The position numbers and the translations under genes are program-made. DNA of 64,000 bases from Iphione sp. A-MEVVRFRX5 (taxonomy: Eukaryota), in NCBI GenBank assembly GCA_976226885.1, contig OZ320315.1, positions 73,346,001 to 73,410,000 of the forward strand, read 5' to 3'. This document shows positions 1 through 64,000 of this stretch, one piece after another. Position 1 is the stretch's first letter. Every line of letters starts with the position of its first letter. The notes below the pieces were generated by a model. That model worked only from the letters and a program-made list of their open reading frames with translations. It was not told the origin of the DNA and did not search any database.

Positions 1-344
1 TAGATAGTGAGAATATCCATAGGCCGGTGTCTGCCCACCTTAAAGCGGGTGTGGAGGATATCAGAGCAAGACTCTTCATGCGTGACTCCTCCAGATTCTA
101 GGAGTTCGATGCCCTCCTTATAGTAAACTGCAACACCTCCACCTCGGACCTTCTTACCAGCCAGTCGATCTTGTCGCACCAGCTGGTATCCAGGAATGTT
201 TAATTCCTTGTCCAATATGGACTTTCCTAACCAGGTCTCACTTAGGCAGCAGATGTCCACATTGTCCTGATGAAGTAGCTGCGATAATTGCCAAACTTTC
301 TTAGTTAGGCTCCGAATATTATAAGCAACTATGCGGAAACCCAT
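1..344 (-). CDS. ORF2 N-terminus: AP-endonuclease (APE/EEP) domain of a LINE; partial at window edge, not in the ORF track
   Basis: Manual translation from ATG at 344: MGFRIVAYNIRSLTKKVWQLSQLLHQDNVDICCLSETWLGKSILDKELNIPGYQLVRQDRLAGKKVRGGGVAVYYKEG. This contains the N-I-R-S-L, D-I-x-x-L-S-E-T-W-L, G-Y-x-x-x-R-x-D-R and G-G-G-V-A-V-Y motifs of CR1/L2-like APE domains. Confidence 0.92.
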   Translation of the reverse strand, partial: MGFRIVAYNIRSLTKKVWQLSQLLHQDNVDICCLSETWLGKSILDKELNIPGYQLVRQDRLAGKKVRGGGVAVYYKEGIELLESGGVTHEESCSDILHTRFKVGRHRPMDILTI

Positions 345-1171
345 GGTAACTTCCCACAGTTGCAGCACAAGGTTAGTAGGATTGGGATTGTGGTGGAAAG
401 GGGATTAGACTCCTCACGGTCTTAAAATTAACGATTTGTGATGTGGTGTAATTGATAGCTATTTGGGAATAGTAAAGCGTGAGGGAGGATTAATTCCAGT
501 GGGTGGGGAAAATAGTTTAGTGGTGTGGTGATTTGCATGGATGAGACCAGATACAAGCACATGCGGTAATCGACATACATATAATAGTCCACCGCCCCCG
601 TCGGCAAGCGGTGCACCGTGTTATCGAGTATTGTCTAGGATAATATAGTGTGCTTGGTTTCCAGGATGAAAACAGAGGTAGCGCAAATACAGCAAGGTTT
701 CAGGCACATTCATACAGACAGTAATAACTACCAGACTACTAGATACATGAGAAGGTCGAAACCTCTATTCACAACTTGAGTTAACATAATCTCGTGTAAC
801 CACCAACAGTGATTTAGGGAGGTATGGACGGTCACCATGGTCACCGGGGCAACAAGCGATAGGTCAGTGTGAAAATGCGATTAGTGGTATATTAGATGGA
901 GAATGCAGCATTCAAGAGTCTTGGATATTATCATACGACACCCATGTACAATTAGATAGCATGTAACACTCTCCAGAAAAACAGTCTGAGATAAACATGG
1001 AACCAGATCACAGTGCAGGTATTACTCCAAAAAACAATCAATCTACACCCTATCATTTTGTAAAACGGTGGGTTTCCATGACGGGTGTTGACACTGAAGG
1101 ATTCACTGATCATAGGCATCAACTCGATAACTCAACATGTTGGCATCACAGGTATACTAAGTCCCGAGGTC

Positions 1172-1873
1172 CTAGTACCAATAATGGACCGGCGGCCCAT
1201 ACATGTTGAAGAACTGACACAAGAAGCGTGCCACTTCATCACACCAATCATTTATCACATAAGCCTCAACATTTATACCGTCCAGTAAGAGATGTTCACC
1301 ATTCACCCCCCAGACATCATTACTGTGACTGTTTACAAGTCTGTCCAACCCTGGCGGGTGAAGGCCATACCTTCTGCCTGTTAGATTGCTGACCCTGTTG
1401 TGAATCCTAGTCAGGTCATTTAGGATGATTTGCTGATAAGGGAATTCATAGTAGAGGTCCGGTTCGCAGCGCCTCAGCATGATGCCAGGCACAGGTGCAA
1501 CCACGAGTCTCGCACCCCTGCCGTCCATTCCTCGTGCTATTGTTGTCAGCCTACCGATGTCCATTAGCAGCCGGTCCACATACCCGTCCACTGACTGGTT
1601 GCGCGGTGTCCACTGACAGCATTCTCGTCTGATGATGTCGAACGTGCCAGTCATAAGCAGGACTAAATCAACATCCGACCAGGAAATTGACCGACCCAGG
1701 CGTCGAAGCCTTGAGTATGTTACCCGTCTCACTCGCAGTACCTGTAGAAACATCGGCGGTAATGGCATCTGCCTCAGTCGAGACATTATCCATCTTGTGC
1801 GACTGTCAACCACGATCAGAACCCTAATACACCAGCAGTCCGGTATATTGTAGTGCGTCCGAATGACAGTCAC
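1172..1873 (-). CDS. SGNH/GDSL-hydrolase-fold protein (esterase-like), probably catalytically impaired
   Basis: RVLIVVDS (block I-like), DLVLLMTGTFDI (block III GxND-like, N to F), HLLLDGINV (block V DGxH-like, H to N). Alignable with 61826..62536. The track start is a GTG overlapping CAG, and there is no ATG before block I. Confidence 0.7.
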   Translation of the reverse strand: MTVIRTHYNIPDCWCIRVLIVVDSRTRWIMSRLRQMPLPPMFLQVLRVRRVTYSRLRRLGRSISWSDVDLVLLMTGTFDIIRRECCQWTPRNQSVDGYVDRLLMDIGRLTTIARGMDGRGARLVVAPVPGIMLRRCEPDLYYEFPYQQIILNDLTRIHNRVSNLTGRRYGLHPPGLDRLVNSHSNDVWGVNGEHLLLDGINVEAYVINDWCDEVARFLCQFFNMYGPPVHYWY

Positions 1874-2070
1874 TGCAGCAGAACGTCATACACATGATCA
1901 GTAAGCAGCAAGAGCTTGTCGCTGTAGTTCACATATCACACTTAATTGAGTAGCAGGCGCACATCTTTGACAATGTACGACAACCAAAAATATAACAAGC
2001 TACGGACACCATCATTTATACATCGACATAAATCAACATGCGACATGACTCGTAGATGTAACATCACTCG

Positions 2071-3504
2071 TTAACTGCTGATGATCTTATCCCTGAAGCG
2101 CGTAAGTGCTTTACCTAGCATGTTTGAGGCATTTTCTGCGTAACCGGCACTGCTATCATCTAGCGTTATAACACCAGCACCTAGACGCGGGTCATAATCA
2201 AGATATACTAACGATCTATTGCCCGTGTTCTTTAAAAAGATAATTAACTCTGGATTTGCGTTGTATTTGCACTCAATGAGAGTGTCTAGGGTTACCTCGA
2301 CAGCGTCCTTCCATAATTGAGATTCTTTTATCCTTTTGCCAATACGGCGCGATTCGTAGCCCGAAACAGCGTTGTTGATGTCTCGCTCCGCGCGAGAATC
2401 AGCGCAAATGCGCGATTTGCAAGAGTTGAACGCAGTTTCGAGGCAGTCGTAGACATTGCCATCTAGTTCCAGCGGCGAGTTTTCTGTGGGAGATAAGCCA
2501 GGCGTGTCGTTGGAGAATCCCAGTATGTTGTCCTTCTCTTCCATCTTCTCTATCTCCTGTAGGATCTCATCGGGCAACGAGTGATGGTCTAGCGGCGTGT
2601 AACGCTCCCCCTCGATCAGAAGGTCCACGCCTCGCACAGTCGCGCGTTTCCCGTTCTTGCGAGCAGACGATGCTAGTCGTGCCTGTTTGCGATGAGTGTC
2701 CATCGCTCTCGGCGGTATGTCCTCCTTCACGAAAATCTTGTTGTACTCCGTTTTGGCGAGACTGGCTCTGTTCTTCAATATTAGATTCCTCGTCTCTATG
2801 CTGTCAAGTCTTACGCCAACCCGTGTGGTGTAGGTATCCTCCGTGAGGACATAGACATCTCGGATCTTCCGCCTGTGGATGCCAGCACACGCATGGAGCA
2901 CGGAGGCCACAAATTGATCTACATTGAGAGATTCCTTCTTGGGGATCCCTTCAACTACAATTCTGTGGCTGCGTTCTTTGATGTCTTTCCTCGATACGTC
3001 TAGATCAACTCTGTCACATTTCTTCTCCACACAAGTTATCCTCGCCTTCAGGCCGTCGGTTGCACGTTGTGACTTCTTCTCCATGAGATCCCGCTGCGCC
3101 TCCAGTTTGCTGGTAAGTTTAACGTTCTCGTCACGCAGGGCAGCAATCTCCTTCCTGAGCTCAGAAGTGATATGATTGAAATCCTTGCGTAGCTCAATCA
3201 TTTGATCTCTCAGCTGTTCAAATGATTTAGAATCTCTCTTGGTGCTGTCAGCGCCCACACCATTGCGAGTAGTGTTGTCGGAGTTGACAGCATTGACAGC
3301 TGTGTCAGCCGTGGGTTTGTTGACATTGTGGTCCCGCTCAATGATGGCGTCGTTCTTGGTATTATCGCCCGCACCCAGTTTGTCCTCCGACAATTTCTGG
3401 GTACCATCCTGATTCCCTTCCGGTCGCCCTCCTCTGGTCATCGAACGAAGGACTGGTGTCTTAGCACCATCCTTGTTCACGTTTGATTGAGTTAACTTTG
3501 GCAT
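2071..3504 (-). CDS. LINE ORF1: disordered N-terminus, coiled coil, L1-type RRM/CTD, C-terminal NADAR (YbiA-like) domain
   Basis: Heptad-rich FEQLRDQMIELRKDFNHITSELRKEIAALRDEN; RSHRIVVEGIP and KIFVKEDIPP (ORF1 RRM/CTD-type); NADAR-like LSPTENSPLELDGNVYDCLETAFNSCK...ESRRIGK...KYNANPELIIFLKNTG...DPRLGAG...ASNMLGKALTRFRDKI. First ATG is at 3504; the track extends to a GTG at 3555. Confidence 0.85.
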   Translation of the reverse strand: MPKLTQSNVNKDGAKTPVLRSMTRGGRPEGNQDGTQKLSEDKLGAGDNTKNDAIIERDHNVNKPTADTAVNAVNSDNTTRNGVGADSTKRDSKSFEQLRDQMIELRKDFNHITSELRKEIAALRDENVKLTSKLEAQRDLMEKKSQRATDGLKARITCVEKKCDRVDLDVSRKDIKERSHRIVVEGIPKKESLNVDQFVASVLHACAGIHRRKIRDVYVLTEDTYTTRVGVRLDSIETRNLILKNRASLAKTEYNKIFVKEDIPPRAMDTHRKQARLASSARKNGKRATVRGVDLLIEGERYTPLDHHSLPDEILQEIEKMEEKDNILGFSNDTPGLSPTENSPLELDGNVYDCLETAFNSCKSRICADSRAERDINNAVSGYESRRIGKRIKESQLWKDAVEVTLDTLIECKYNANPELIIFLKNTGNRSLVYLDYDPRLGAGVITLDDSSAGYAENASNMLGKALTRFRDKIISS

Positions 3505-3555
3505 GACTACCTTAAAAGCACTCTTCCTTGAGGAGTCTAACCACCTACGCGTCAC

Positions 3556-3570
3556 CTACTCTTGCGCCAT
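3556..3570 (-). promoter_or_regulatory. 4-codon uORF / ATGGCG leader motif (MAQE*) upstream of ORF1
   Basis: ATG GCG CAA GAG TAG, 66 nt upstream of the ORF1 ATG. The equivalent ATG GCG TCT GAA TAG occurs in member B. Confidence 0.5.
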
Positions 3571-4655
3571 TTAAATTTATGGATTTTTTTTTCTGTACAT
3601 TTGGCACTCTTCGCTTGAATTTTAATATCTGTACGCTGTATCGACGTTTGGCTGCGTGCTATAGCTATTATCAGCCAAATGTGTATTTTTAGCATGCATG
3701 TTCAGTCCACAAACCAACGTATCCTATGCACAAAGCCTGCATAAACCATTAAAACACTGATCACAAGATACCAAATGTCCTGCAGTTCGCTGTGAAAGTA
3801 CCTTGCAACACTAGGAGTGTGACTAACCATAAAACAATGGGCAAGTGACTAGGCCAGAGAAATTAATATTACAAAAAGATTTAATATGGCTGATATGATG
3901 AAGCCGGAAGTTAGACACCATTTGGTTGGATGCCAAAGATTACAGAAAAAGCATTCTAAATGAAGGAGTTACTGACATGTAAGTAAAAGGACTGCAAGTT
4001 GATAATTACTTTACAGTATAGAACACTTCTACATGTATTTGTCTATGGAGTCTGATGAAACTATGCATGACCCTATACAAACCGAAACAGCAAAATTTTC
4101 ACTATGTGAGTGTACAGTATAACAAACCTAAAAAGTGTATTTATGCTTGGTGCGACAACAGCACAGATACAGTTGAGTCCCAATTTGCAATTAGTGGTGC
4201 AGTCCGAGTTCAAATGGTCGCAATAGCAAGTTTGGCCAGAAATCGATCGAGTAGAGAGTCTGGGCTTGAAAAAATATTTTAGCAGAAACGTGTCTGTCAT
4301 CCGCTACTTCCTCACCATGTGGTATGAGTATAGGTTAAGAATAGACTTCAGGGTTGATTGTTATTATGTAATCTGGTGTCTAGACATTGCGTTAGAGTGG
4401 TCACCTGGTTCCTCCGGTAACCACTCCGGTAGCTTTTTAACAAAGCAACCAATCAGAAGGTTGCAGGGGTTATATTTAGCAACAGGACTAGACAGAATGT
4501 CTAGACACACTCCAAGAGAGCACCATTCCAGCAGGCTATATTTCTGCATTGGGAGTGAATTTTATTTTATGATCATTGTCATTATTTCTTGTCGCTTCCC
4601 TTGTCAGAGACCAAGCCCATGTTACAATATCCCTTTCTCCCTCTGTCTCTATTAA

Positions 4656-60144: not shown

Positions 60145-60159
60145 ATGGCGTCTGAATAG
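60145..60159 (+). promoter_or_regulatory. 4-codon uORF / ATGGCG leader motif (MASE*)
   Basis: ATG GCG TCT GAA TAG, 64 nt upstream of the ORF1 ATG. Confidence 0.5.
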
Positions 60160-60208
60160 ACGTGTGCGTTAGCGCTACCCTGAGCATCGGAGTGCATGCA
60201 GCATAAGA

Positions 60209-61702
60209 ATGGGCAAGAAATCGCAAACAAACGAAGAAAGGCCAGGGGATACCTCAGAGACGCCGAAACTGCGACCTAGAGGACGACCCAGAGGCCCGTC
60301 AAAATCATCCAGCCGTGATTCAAGTCTGGTGGGCGAAAATAGGAAAGAGTCACTACCGAGGCGGCCTCGACAAGGCACGCAGAGCGGGAGCGGGAACGAG
60401 CATGTAAACAAACCGGAGAAGCCAATGCCGCCAGGGAAGCCTGTCAACGGTGTCCCCGGTCAGCTGACAGACGACTCGCCTGAGACTGACACTGACACTA
60501 GTACCAGCGGTGTCGGCGGGGGTAGCGTGAGTACAGACTCTTCTCTCCACACAGCTATCCAAGAGCTACGTGATGATCTGACTGCAATTCGCACTCATTA
60601 TGACCAAGAAATTGCCAACCTGCATAGAGAGCTGGCAGCTTCACAAGCCGAAAATAACAGACTGCGGGAAGCTGTCAAAGAGCTTACACAGCCGGAGTCT
60701 GTAGTGAGTAGGCTTGACACATTAGGCGTTGAGCTAAAGGCGATTTCGGTAGAGTGTGATAGGCTGAAGGAAGATGTAATAAAAATGGAAATTGAGAGTA
60801 GATCACGCAGAATTATTTTGGAAGGCATTAGGAAGGAGAACGCTAAGGAAGTTGACTTGTTTATTTACAGACTAGTATGGGACATTGCTGGAGTCCGCAG
60901 GGAGAGTGTCAAGAAAATACTACCAGTCGCGGACAACAACAATGGGGCACGTTTTAGTGTCCTGTTTGACACAAAACAAACGCGGAACAGTGTTCTAAAA
61001 CACCGAGCAAAGCTGATGAGCTACCACAAGTATAAACGAGTTTTCTTGCGTGAAGACTTACCAGCAAGTGCCATAGATAAACATCGTCGCCAGGCAAGAA
61101 TCGCGGCGGCTGCTAAGCGTCAAGGCAGAAGCGCGATGGTGAAAGGAATGGACCTAGTGCTAGACGGCGAGACATACTCACCGAGTGAAGAAAAATTCCT
61201 GCCAGTTGAGCTGCAACCTGCAAATAATGCCACAAAGGTTGAAACAGAAGTTTTCAGCTTCAACAGTGATTGCCCATATCTGTCACCAATGGAGGATTCC
61301 CCCATGATTTTCGATGGCATTTTCTACCGGAACCTCGAAACTGCGTACCAATGCCAGAAATCGCGCGCATGCGAGAGTGGAGCCAGTGTGAAGACGCTGC
61401 TACATACGACGTGCGGTTACACAGCAAGAAAAGTCGGAAACTCCATTAATACAACGCCAGAATGGGTTCAAGATTCCGAGGTACAGTTGAAAAAATTGTA
61501 TGAGCATAAGATAAACCGCAGTTTGGCATTCCGCGAGCTTTTACTAAGCACAGGTTCAAAGAACATTCTGTACGCGGACGTGGATCAGTCACTCGGTAGT
61601 GGCTTCTCACTCGCTAGTGAAACAGACAGTGAAGCAGAGCTGGCAGGTAGCAACCTAATTGGACGGGTGCTGATGAGCATTCGTGCTGAACTTAATGCAT
61701 AG
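60209..61702 (+). CDS. LINE ORF1: basic/disordered N-terminus, coiled coil, RRM/CTD, C-terminal NADAR (YbiA-like) domain
   Basis: RSRRIILEGIRKE, RVFLREDLPA; PYLSPMEDSPMIFDGIFYRNLETAYQCQK...YTARKVGN...W...FRELLLSTG...DQSLGSG...GSNLIGRVLMSIRAEL parallels the NADAR pattern (SNF..P...DG..Y...EHYFQAQK...A...G...W...K..Q...LR.LLL.T...D..WG...G.N.LG..LM..R..L). Confidence 0.88.
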   Translation: MGKKSQTNEERPGDTSETPKLRPRGRPRGPSKSSSRDSSLVGENRKESLPRRPRQGTQSGSGNEHVNKPEKPMPPGKPVNGVPGQLTDDSPETDTDTSTSGVGGGSVSTDSSLHTAIQELRDDLTAIRTHYDQEIANLHRELAASQAENNRLREAVKELTQPESVVSRLDTLGVELKAISVECDRLKEDVIKMEIESRSRRIILEGIRKENAKEVDLFIYRLVWDIAGVRRESVKKILPVADNNNGARFSVLFDTKQTRNSVLKHRAKLMSYHKYKRVFLREDLPASAIDKHRRQARIAAAAKRQGRSAMVKGMDLVLDGETYSPSEEKFLPVELQPANNATKVETEVFSFNSDCPYLSPMEDSPMIFDGIFYRNLETAYQCQKSRACESGASVKTLLHTTCGYTARKVGNSINTTPEWVQDSEVQLKKLYEHKINRSLAFRELLLSTGSKNILYADVDQSLGSGFSLASETDSEAELAGSNLIGRVLMSIRAELNA

Positions 61703-61825
61703 TCATGCATGATATGCTGAGCTTTAGTTGCATTATGCTAAACAACTTAGATGCAGTCATAAGCATGATGTGCTGAGCTTTAGTTGCCGTGAGCTAGTCA
61801 GTCGTGATGCAGTTACACGTCATTA

Positions 61826-62536
61826 ATGTACTTTCATTTATATTCAGAATGGTCCTACATCAGCCAACCGGAGGTGAGCAGTGCGCGCAGAATGCGTGTG
61901 CTCATCATCACGGATGGTCGTCTGATACGCACCTTGGAGGATTTGGAACGGGAGGATCTGCCGCCACTAACGATCCATATGCTGCAGGCTACGAAAGGGT
62001 CGTACAAGAAGCTGTGGAAAGAACGTCTCTACGTTGATGTCACCACCTACGACCTGATTCTTATCTCCTTTGGCATAAGGGAGGTTCTTCGCCGAGAAAT
62101 GGGGCAGTGGTCAGTCCGCTGTCGCAGCCCCATGAAATACCTGGAAATGCTGCACTACTACGTTGGTCGCATACGTAATTGGGCGAGTGGACCACTGAAT
62201 ACGGGGCCTAAAGTGATCTGCTGCCCTATGGCTGGAATTCTGCTGTGCCGATGCGAACCCGACATAATCGGTACCGATGAGCAATATCTGCTAGACGCCC
62301 TGGTGTCTACCCACAACCTTTTTTGCAAGATGGAAGCTGTAAGATACGATATGAGTGTACCACGCATTGACTTGCCGGTCAACGATTACGCGAACAATCA
62401 TGTCATAGTCCAGAGTCAGTTTCTACGACGTGATGGATATCAAGTTACGGTTGAAGTAAGTGCTATATGGGCCCGCATGCTAGCTCTATATTTTGCTGAG
62501 TATGTTAGGGGCAATGAAAATGGTGGTGCTAATTAA
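61826..62536 (+). CDS. SGNH/GDSL-fold protein lacking the catalytic Ser and His
   Basis: MRVLIITDGR (Ser absent), YDLILISFGIREV, FLRRDGYQV (His absent). Alignable with 1172..1873. Confidence 0.7.
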   Translation: MYFHLYSEWSYISQPEVSSARRMRVLIITDGRLIRTLEDLEREDLPPLTIHMLQATKGSYKKLWKERLYVDVTTYDLILISFGIREVLRREMGQWSVRCRSPMKYLEMLHYYVGRIRNWASGPLNTGPKVICCPMAGILLCRCEPDIIGTDEQYLLDALVSTHNLFCKMEAVRYDMSVPRIDLPVNDYANNHVIVQSQFLRRDGYQVTVEVSAIWARMLALYFAEYVRGNENGGAN

Positions 62537-62588
62537 GTCAACCTCCATCCGGCACATAAGACTACGCCCAAAATCATAACATGCTAAA

Positions 62589-62815
62589 CAGCGATGCATG
62601 TATAGACATTTTCGATTATTTTAATTCTCACTAATGATCGTTTCTCGTACGGTCTTAATTTCAGAGCAGCGATGCATGTATGGACACTTGATTAGTTAAA
62701 TCATTCAATAGTGATCCTTTTCTCACACGATCTTATTTTTAGAGCAGCGATGCATGTATGGACACTTGATTATTTAAATCCTTCAGTAGTGATCCTATCT
62801 CATACGATCTTAATC
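62589..62815. repeat. Three 78-bp tandem repeats in the SGNH-ORF2 spacer
   Basis: CAGCGATGCATGTAT(A/G)GACA starts at 62589, 62667 and 62745. A second duplication of about 59 bp lies at 62999..63117. Confidence 0.9.
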
Positions 62816-63600
62816 TATGTTTGTTAATCTACCTCTATTTTTATGCATGTCAGGAGCCTAACGATTAGTCGCCCAATTATCTCCTTGGTGCATGTTAGCA
62901 CTAATGATCGTGGACTTTTAATATAAATCAAAGGTCTCATCCCGAATATCTGCAATAATCTGTGATATTTATGTAGTTTGGATAATCTGATGTTAAATTA
63001 TACTGTAGCAAATTTTCTATCAGTTCTTAATTGATGAAAACCATGATAGCTCTGGGATTATACTGTGTAGCAACTTTTCTAGATCTATTCATACTTAATG
63101 AAAACTATGATAGCTCTTGTATCGCAATAATATGATTGTAATCAACAGTGTGCAGCATGTTTAACCAAGATTTGTTCTGACTTGGATGCAGGATGTGTAG
63201 TTAATAAGAGCCTGTCTGGTGACTTAGCATAAGTATACTAAACGCAAGCTGCTAGTAAATGGCCTCTCATGTCAAGATTTCAACCTAGACTGGCCATGTA
63301 TGGTGAGATATTATGTCAGGGCAGTATTGACTTGATTTACGTACCTCTCTAGGGATTCCTTACAAGGTATGACTGAGCGGTTATCTTTTAAACGGTCTTC
63401 ATTGTATGCAACAGTTAAATAAAATTAAACAAAACGCACATGGCAACTCCTAGTTAATGGCGGTGTGACTGCTTCAGGAATGGTTGGTGCACGGTGGCTG
63501 CTGCTTGGTATGATTAAACGGATGGAAGGAGGCATGAAAATGCGTACAAGGTATGGTGTATGGGCCCGATGTCTCGGGGTAGCGTGAATGTAAACTAGAA

Positions 63601-64000
63601 ATGAAAGGAGTGAGACTCGTGGCTTATAATATAAGAAGCCTAAGATCGAAAGTGGTTGAATTGGGGTTATGTCTGAGGGAGAATGATATCGACATATGTG
63701 TGATTACCGAAACATGGCTAAATCATACACATAGTGATGGAGAAATCCGAATAGATGGATATTCGGCTGTAAGGAAGGACAGACACAGTGTGACGCGTGC
63801 TAAAGGGGGGGGGATTGTAATATATGTAAAGAATGGCGTTGAGATACTTCAGGAATTTGACACAGATCCTGAGAATGGTGAATGTGAGTCATTAGGCGTG
63901 ATGCTCAAGATGGGGAAGCGTCGTAAGCATGTGGTGTACGGGATTTACCGACCACCACACGACAGGATGAAAGACAGTATGAAAGAGATTGAACGTGTGG
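63601..64000 (+). CDS. ORF2 N-terminus: APE endonuclease; partial at window edge, not in the ORF track
   Basis: MKGVRLVAYNIRSLRSKVVELGLCLRENDIDICVITETWLNHTHSDGEIRIDGYSAVRKDR...KGGGIVIYVK...ECESL...VYGIYRPP; stop-free to the window end. Confidence 0.93.
   Translation, partial: MKGVRLVAYNIRSLRSKVVELGLCLRENDIDICVITETWLNHTHSDGEIRIDGYSAVRKDRHSVTRAKGGGIVIYVKNGVEILQEFDTDPENGECESLGVMLKMGKRRKHVVYGIYRPPHDRMKDSMKEIERV

Follow-up and report, generated by a model that had tools for sequence, protein, structure and literature searches.

Esterases carried by long interspersed nuclear elements (LINEs) have been described as domains of the protein encoded by the first open reading frame (ORF1p) in CR1, L2 and RTEX elements, and also in Penelope-like elements; the active site of these esterases is conserved, and the ORF1ps that contain them are without an RNA recognition motif (RRM) (PMC3905857). 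GDSL open reading frames (ORFs) have been captured by rotifer long terminal repeat elements (PMC5408684). A second module, the YbiA-family NADAR domain, is mentioned in one sentence of a 2025 paper as part of the ORF1 of several Crassostrea gigas LINE families that Repbase files under Tx1 (PMC12477816). The present analysis concerns a stretch of 64,000 nucleotides from Iphione sp. (C4:73346001-73410000 within the 1.18-Gb assembly labelled G000), referred to here as the window, for which flanking DNA was fetched at both edges. A LINE with three ORFs lies at each edge of the window, and in both copies, termed copy A and copy B, the order is ORF1, a middle ORF, and ORF2. With a probability of roughly 0.78, these elements belong to a LINE group of great age, diversity and abundance that has an apurinic/apyrimidinic endonuclease (APE) and three cistrons; the two accessory modules, a NADAR domain on ORF1p and a free-standing SGNH-fold protein, are now degenerate in the A and B lineages.

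Each of the closest described systems resembles this layout in part. The ZfL2-1-type esterase ORF1p (Kapitonov & Jurka 2003; Schneider et al. 2013, PMC3905857) likewise places an SGNH module upstream of APE and reverse transcriptase (RT) in an element with a repeat-ended tail that is not poly(A). However, its esterase lies inside ORF1p after the coiled coil and has a conserved and active catalytic site, whereas the module of the present elements is encoded by a separate cistron behind an RRM-bearing ORF1p and has lost the catalytic residues. On a link between the ZfL2-1 esterase and the middle ORF, profile-versus-PDB sequence searches speak neither for nor against. The ORF1p of human LINE-1, whose trimer structure is matched by the ORF1 model, shares the long coiled coil, the RRM, and the C-terminal domain (CTD), but LINE-1 also has a C-terminal Cys motif in ORF2 and a poly(A) tail; the present elements have neither of these, and their ORF1p carries an additional NADAR domain of 150 residues. 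NADAR/YbiA hydrolases, which include the DarT1-NADAR antitoxins and the P. nicotianae protein (PMC11543638, PMC11125620), are matched by Pfam score, by the fold of the solved structures 8bau and 2b3w, by the first catalytic Glu, and by the Lys that binds pyrophosphate. They have Glu, Asp or His on the last strand, in contrast to the A and B lineages, which have Tyr there, Leu in place of the next Trp, and the domain fused to a LINE ORF1p. The C. gigas Tx1 families (PMC12477816) share the presence of NADAR in an invertebrate LINE ORF1 and, as far as that one-sentence description goes, are set apart by their filing under Tx1 and by the lack of any mention of a middle ORF.

Copy A (1..3572, minus strand) represents the 5′ 3.57 kb of a LINE of ~6.95 kb that continues to ~3381 bases before the window start, and copy B (60145..64000, plus strand) represents the 5′ 3.86 kb of a LINE of ~7.25 kb that continues ~3395 bases past the window end. 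The earlier note, which had been made from the window alone, had claimed the same gene order in two strongly diverged members, and this agrees with the ORFs as mapped here and with the identity between the copies, which is 26% for the middle ORF and 29% for ORF1. The placement of both copies was also right, although the 5′ ends needed correction, to 60145 (from 60128) in copy B and to ~3572 in copy A. The extension of both window edges, which that note had called for, recovered the RT-bearing ORF2 and the 3′ ends of both elements, and the RT expected downstream of APE was indeed found off-window. The frames had been described as uninterrupted, which holds inside the window; off-window, the ORF2 of copy A is broken once, and that of copy B is intact at 923 amino acids.

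Genome-wide protein searches of this assembly returned 2,579 middle-ORF candidates with the copy B query and 2,316 with the copy A query, and the majority of the 150 candidates scored per search were stop-free, at 32–100% identity to the query. To evaluate linkage, 58 loci were fetched and the flanking motifs were required to be on the same strand as the middle ORF. The ORF1 motif was present upstream of the middle ORF in 53/58 loci, and the ORF2 (APE) motif was present downstream in 52/58, so that the SGNH-like ORF travels together with the other two. Dozens of independently sampled loci show the layout, which is therefore not due to chance. Selection was measured as the ratio of nonsynonymous to synonymous substitution rates (dN/dS; Nei-Gojobori, 17 pairs with unsaturated dS), and the values were 0.05–0.18 for the middle ORF, 0.11–0.20 for ORF1, and 0.05–0.15 for the N-terminus of ORF2. 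In deep comparisons, the middle protein retained 57–62% identity versus 43–54% for ORF1. All three ORFs are thus kept by strong purifying selection, and the range of 0.05–0.20 across the three supports the view that selection acts on a three-protein retroelement.

The middle ORF (copy A, 1172..1873, minus strand, 233 amino acids; copy B, 61826..62536, plus strand, 236 amino acids) did not match any Pfam family in either copy. A structure of the copy A protein was modelled using AlphaFold2 (AF2) from an alignment of 35 diverse copies, with a predicted local distance difference test (pLDDT) score of 90.8 and a predicted template modelling (pTM) score of 0.89. Foldseek searches with this model gave 78 PDB matches at E<=1e-3, and those listed were almost all GDSL/SGNH esterases, lipases and acyltransferases. 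The second-look aligner VIA gave Z-scores of 13–15.6 and root-mean-square deviations of 2.6–3.7 Å over 170–190 residues. Profile-versus-PDB sequence searches with two middle-ORF profiles gave no significant match to solved SGNH proteins. As judged from the model, the middle protein has the SGNH alpha/beta/alpha fold over ~215 conserved residues.

The catalytic positions of this predicted fold were tallied in 57 distinct sequences, 27 of A-type and 30 of B-type. The block I Asp was invariant in both types. The nucleophile Ser was present in 17/27 A-type sequences and in 1/30 B-type sequences, which mostly have Asp; the oxyanion Asn was present in neither type (0/27, replaced by Phe or Tyr, and 0/30, replaced by Arg or Gln); and the block V His was present in 3/27 and 10/30, respectively. 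The full Ser/Asn/His set was found in 0/57 sequences, and the residues at these three positions are Ser/Phe/Asn in copy A and Gly/Arg/Gln in copy B. The designation of this protein as a pseudo-esterase is supported by the modelled fold together with the loss of the oxyanion Asn in 57/57 sequences. Other residues are invariant across the 26%-identical lineages, namely Asp-x-Arg after strand 1, Glu-x-x-Gln-Trp, Glu-Pro-Asp, and His-Asn. A host protein offers a parallel: the OSK domain of Oskar, a germ-plasm protein, has an SGNH fold without catalytic residues and functions in a ribonucleoprotein (RNP). It has been named as a non-catalytic SGNH protein (PMC3905857), and it resembles the middle protein in fold and in the lack of catalytic residues; the likeness is without a demonstrated sequence relation, and OSK comes from a host protein rather than a transposon.

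The A-type middle proteins (window 1172-1873; L041-L070) are also unusual in composition. Their conserved core is lysine-free in 22/28 copies, versus 25–32 arginines, and the copy A protein has zero lysine. The A-type lineages with a lysine-free core share just 45–60% identity, and the ORF1s of the same elements encode 20–37 lysines; B-type middle proteins have 7–10. The depletion is taken here as probable protein-level selection against lysine.

ORF1 was found at 2071..3504 (minus strand) in copy A, where it encodes 477 amino acids from the first ATG (the ORF program lists 494 amino acids from a GTG start at 3555), and at 60209..61702 (plus strand) in copy B, where it encodes 497 amino acids. 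The Pfam NADAR family (PF08719) was matched at both ORF1 C-termini, with 48.7 bits in copy A (2083..2487, minus strand; E 1.3e-12) and 57.3 bits in copy B (61238..61693, plus strand; E 3.1e-15) versus the curated cut-off of 35.1. An AF2 model of the copy B protein, built from an alignment of 27 ORF1s, contains a disordered region at residues 1–108, a long helix at 109–197 (coiled coil), an alpha/beta domain at 201–282 (RRM), a helix with a small sheet at 286–323 (CTD), and a NADAR fold at 342–496; copy A shares the disordered N-terminus, coiled coil, RRM, CTD and NADAR, with copy B as the modelled representative. With Foldseek, the model matched the P. nicotianae NADAR structure 8bau (E 1.7e-7, TM 0.70), E. 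coli YbiA, and the human L1ORF1p trimer (2yko/2ykp/2ykq; E 1.9e-5, TM 0.61, ~180 residues). A profile match to 2b3w reached E 2.1e-6, and a single-sequence NADAR search against PDB gave no match. Because of this domain layout and these Foldseek matches, ORF1p is predicted to be a coiled coil-RRM-CTD protein of the L1 type, and not of the CR1 type, to which a C-terminal NADAR domain has been added. A prediction of a complex between residues 198–497 of the copy B ORF1p and the copy B middle protein gave a score of 0.00, which weighs neither way.

In the NADAR protein of P. nicotianae, Glu43 and Glu125 touch the distal ribose, and mutation of the equivalent last-strand acid abolishes NADAR activity (PMC11543638); the residue on the last strand, which is Glu, Asp or His, defines the family (PMC11543638, PMC11125620). 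The corresponding positions of the LINE proteins were assigned by profile alignment to 2b3w and 8bau and by direct alignment. No A or B lineage departs from the first catalytic Glu or the Lys (Glu377 and Lys384 in copy B), and one Trp is likewise invariant. All sampled A-type and B-type lineages have Tyr instead of the last-strand Glu (Tyr455 in copy B) and Leu instead of the next Trp. These replacements indicate that the NADAR domain of the A and B lineages is also catalytically degenerate, as judged by alignment.

Relatives that keep the catalytic motifs were found both outside and within this genome. A single-sequence middle-ORF search and an ORF1 profile search of the word-indexed protein database gave no match, and an exhaustive profile search of 1.84 billion representatives yielded no more than six relatives, all of them weak; four of these weakly match Pfam GDSL families, and the six led to loci outside this genome. 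Four proteins, P0123 from a Logan contig and P0124-P0126 from the ENA assembly ERZ25767047, have the canonical SGNH motifs Asp-Ser-Arg-Gly, Gly-x-Asn and Asp-Gly-x-His. In L074 of ERZ25767047, an 817-amino-acid NADAR protein is followed after 4 nt by a 205-amino-acid SGNH ORF and, after ~1 kb, by a 962-amino-acid APE-RT protein; L076 of the same assembly has this gene order as well, and in L073, the Logan contig, the NADAR ORF overlaps the SGNH ORF by ATGA. The last-strand Glu and the Trp of NADAR are both kept in L073, L074 and L076. The best match to ORF2 in the 5.8-billion-protein database, P0001 (E 2.8e-77, 25% identity), sits in L083 of ERZ25767047, downstream of a NADAR ORF and a 204-amino-acid SGNH ORF in which the Ser and His are kept and Gly-Ile-Cys replaces Gly-x-Asn.

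Within this genome, a third large group (L077-L082; 1,719 candidates) also has the three-ORF order. Its SGNH ORF keeps the catalytic Ser and His, and the NADAR domains of L077, L079 and L081/L082 keep the Glu, with the Trp replaced by Ser, Thr or Arg; L078 and L080 yielded no upstream ORF1. The spacing of this group is its own, with a long spacer between ORF1 and the SGNH ORF, and ORF2 within about 70–120 nt. Since the NADAR Glu and the SGNH Ser and His persist in relatives from this and other assemblies, the comparison shows that the three-cistron design is old and that ancestral elements carried two accessory enzymes with competent active sites. In the A and B lineages both active sites are degenerate by the same comparison, yet the proteins are under strong purifying selection.

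Two side observations were made in ERZ25767047, which is a public 'metagenome' assembly. The three-ORF LINEs of L074 and L076 are from a eukaryote, and their NADAR and SGNH motifs are fully canonical. In L071 (5001-11408), a called protein of 2,135 amino acids contains six stretches that match the middle-ORF profile, as tandem SGNH-like units, and no LINE genes were called near it.

ORF2 starts with an ATG at 344 in copy A (1..344, minus strand), where the first 114 codons, which belong to the APE domain, lie in the window before the frame leaves it, and at 63601 in copy B (63601..64000, plus strand), where the first 133 codons lie in the window. The Pfam family Exo_endo_phos was matched at both ORF2 starts. 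The complete copy B protein of 923 amino acids contains APE and RVT_1 (E 2.7e-30), and in copy A the remaining APE and the RT follow off-window, where the single break divides the same domains over pieces of 632 and 275 amino acids in different frames. Both elements are therefore APE-type LINEs, with endonuclease and RT in one ORF.

The clade of this RT was assessed from several features. A C-terminal Cys-rich (CCHC) motif or zinc knuckle is absent from the 923-amino-acid ORF2 of copy B. The match of ORF2 to L1 ORF2p was weak (E 2.5e-7, in the RT region alone), and the match to R2 was stronger (E 4.6e-11). PF14529 was matched by ORF2 and by its best database relatives, and the named relatives of ORF2 include one killifish element and some LINEs with PHD fingers. 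The elements end in short repeats instead of poly(A), as CR1/L2-like elements would. The marks of L1/Tx1 elements were split, in that the coiled coil-RRM-CTD ORF1p is present, and CCHC and poly(A) are absent. The RT most likely belongs to a CR1/L2-like group, an assignment that is plausible but unproven; it is favored because of the missing C-terminal Cys motif, the PF14529 match, the higher score for R2 than for L1, the killifish and PHD-finger relatives, and the repeat-ended 3′ tail.

This assignment bears on whether the layout could be that of an already curated family, such as the Repbase Tx1 families of C. gigas with a NADAR ORF1. That possibility, which concerns novelty only, is a serious one, although we consider it the less probable outcome. 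The presence of NADAR in the ORF1 of the oyster families (PMC12477816) speaks for it, as does the L1/Tx1 type of the ORF1p described here. A Tx1 identity is opposed by the lack of a C-terminal CCHC in ORF2 and of poly(A) in the element, by the PF14529 match of ORF2 and its best relatives, and by the lower score of ORF2 against L1 ORF2p than against R2. In addition, the papers found do not mention a separate esterase ORF. The literature search, with Repbase/Dfam consensus sequences outside its scope, found no description of a separate esterase ORF in a LINE with a NADAR-ORF1. The earlier note had not known this layout from the literature, and this stands for the separate esterase ORF as far as the papers found are concerned; for NADAR in a LINE ORF1 there is the one-sentence precedent (PMC12477816).

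Several observations weigh against the interpretation of an old three-cistron LINE group with degenerate modules. The sole paper found on LINEs with a NADAR ORF1 puts the oyster families in Tx1 (PMC12477816), and the ORF1p here is L1/Tx1-like. Outside this genome, the layout was found in just two assemblies (ERZ25767047 and the Logan contig), and two scans of JGI metagenome contigs, one with the middle-ORF profile and one with the ORF1 profile, gave no match. No target-site duplications were recognized in the flanks of copy A or copy B. The loss of catalysis is read from motif positions, the Ser is still present in more than half of the A-type middle ORFs, and the Tyr of NADAR, or an adjacent Asp, could allow altered chemistry.

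The last of these points leads to the explanation in which both accessory modules would have kept enzymatic activity by way of rewired active sites and on a new substrate, NADAR acting through Tyr455 or the adjacent Asp and the SGNH protein through Asp-x-Arg, Glu-x-x-Gln-Trp, Glu-Pro-Asp and His-Asn. The invariance of these non-classical residues across lineages that share 26% identity, the invariance of the first NADAR Glu, the Lys and one Trp, and dN/dS values as low as those of ORF2 are all in keeping with this proposal. However, the oxyanion Asn is missing throughout, lineages differ freely at the Ser and His positions so that a rewired site must ignore them, and NADAR activity is abolished when the equivalent last-strand acid is mutated (PMC11543638). 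We therefore regard retained catalysis of this kind as unlikely. It is far less probable still that the middle ORF is a passenger, such as a captured host or foreign gene or a nested insertion, rather than a functional part of the retroelement: nothing specific points to it beyond the independent capture of esterase ORFs by several retroelement classes (PMC5408684), and the ORF keeps one position and orientation in at least 50 loci, which represent many lineages of deep divergence, and does so in other organisms too; its purifying selection equals that of ORF2, and deep comparisons show it to be better conserved than ORF1.

The ends of the elements were determined by comparison with other copies. 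The match of copy A to three family members ceases at 3570-3572, which places its 5′ end at ~3572, and comparison with sister copies places its 3′ end at L009 ~4619, so that the element spans about -3381 to 3572. The ends of copy B were set by a 99%-identical copy on C19, which matches from 60145 to L010 ~7396 (~67395 on the window scale). The 5′ untranslated region (UTR) is 68 nt long in copy A (3505..3572, minus strand) and 64 nt long in copy B (60145..60208, plus strand), and its first bases are ATGGCG in both. Despite a protein identity of 26–29%, this hexamer opens both elements (3567-3572, minus strand, and 60145-60150, plus strand), possibly as a conserved initiator or 5′ terminal motif. 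At the 3′ ends, both copies have AATAAAC followed by short tandem repeats of 5–6 nt, and poly(A) is absent in both; the terminus is AATAAACG(GATTT)4 in copy A and AATAAACAG(ATTGAA)2 in copy B.

Both families show signs of mobility. The C19 copy that is 99% identical to copy B is a full copy, and a 5′-truncated 3′ fragment of 1.07 kb on C12 is 99% identical to copy A, the nearest full copies of which are at dS 0.19–0.43. Dispersed copies, including 5′-truncated ones that share the 3′ end, are present. The terminal 60–80 nt (L010 7331-7395; L009 4619-4700) also match dozens of other loci at 78–97%, and the loci that match only this terminal segment may be severely 5′-truncated copies or short interspersed nuclear elements that borrow the tail.

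The arrangement of translation signals around the middle ORF is atypical. Of the middle ORFs, 42/58, copy A included, lack an in-frame ATG ahead of beta-strand 1, though the conserved frame is open there; in copy A the first in-frame ATG occurs only after that strand. The gap from the ORF1 stop to the middle ORF ranges from 0 to 468 nt and is mostly 8–290 nt, and the relative frame varies. In copy A, this gap occupies 1874..2070 (minus strand) when counted to the listed GTG start; the stop-free frame opens ~4 codons upstream of that GTG, which gives a gap of 185 nt to the stop-free frame. In the relatives from outside this genome, the AUG that starts the SGNH ORF lies at the ORF1 stop or overlaps it. 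Fusion of ORF1 to the middle ORF by frameshift or read-through was considered and rejected, as the relative frame is 0, 1 or 2 and stops intervene; a programmed event of either kind is unlikely because the relative frame varies. The middle cistron would instead be translated by termination-reinitiation after ORF1 or from a near-cognate start.

A long spacer separates the middle ORF from ORF2. It measures 525–1422 nt, is T-rich and G-poor, and is alignable only within families; in copy A it is a non-coding segment of 827 nt (345..1171, minus strand), and in copy B it is a non-coding segment of 1064 nt (62537..63600, plus strand) with internal tandem repeats. Conserved coding within the spacer was rejected as an explanation, because translated comparison gave similarity only within families. 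A ~78-nt unit is repeated in ~3 tandem copies at 62589-62815 inside the copy B spacer. An Rfam scan of copy B gave no match.

Taken with the predicted domains, these features suggest how the three products may work together in the old three-cistron LINE group that we favor. ORF1p would serve as an RNA-packaging protein of the L1 type with NADAR appended at its C-terminus, and the second cistron, translated without a conventional AUG, would supply a free-standing SGNH-fold protein. In the A and B lineages, the NADAR and SGNH modules would be non-catalytic parts of the LINE RNP, with binding or structural roles, or would have a changed chemistry. ORF2, beyond the long and fast-evolving spacer, would be translated by internal initiation or by reinitiation.

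Work since 2023 has established that the NADAR fold can take ADP-ribose off nucleic-acid bases, and a lysine-free protein may be read as one that escapes ubiquitylation. We put forward, as a speculative and rather doubtful proposal, that the ancestral enzyme pair stripped an ADP-ribose-type mark from LINE RNA or cDNA, or from the target DNA, and thereby countered host defence; the A and B versions would then be binding subunits or decoys, and the lysine-free A-type protein would evade ubiquitin-dependent degradation. If this were true, the elements would encode an anti-restriction module of their own, and a single genome would hold both its active and its dead versions.

Little is understood of the accessory proteins that LINEs encode, the known ORF1 esterase among them. 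In this one genome, thousands of copies in dozens of deep lineages couple an L1-type ORF1p, a NADAR domain, and a separately encoded SGNH protein. The occurrence of intact and degenerate versions in the same genome provides a natural comparison for the roles of the modules in retrotransposition, and this comparison also bears on whether nucleic-acid ADP-ribosylation restricts animal retroelements. The elements also lend themselves to testing how animal cells translate polycistronic RNAs, given that their middle cistron is without an AUG and that a long spacer precedes ORF2.

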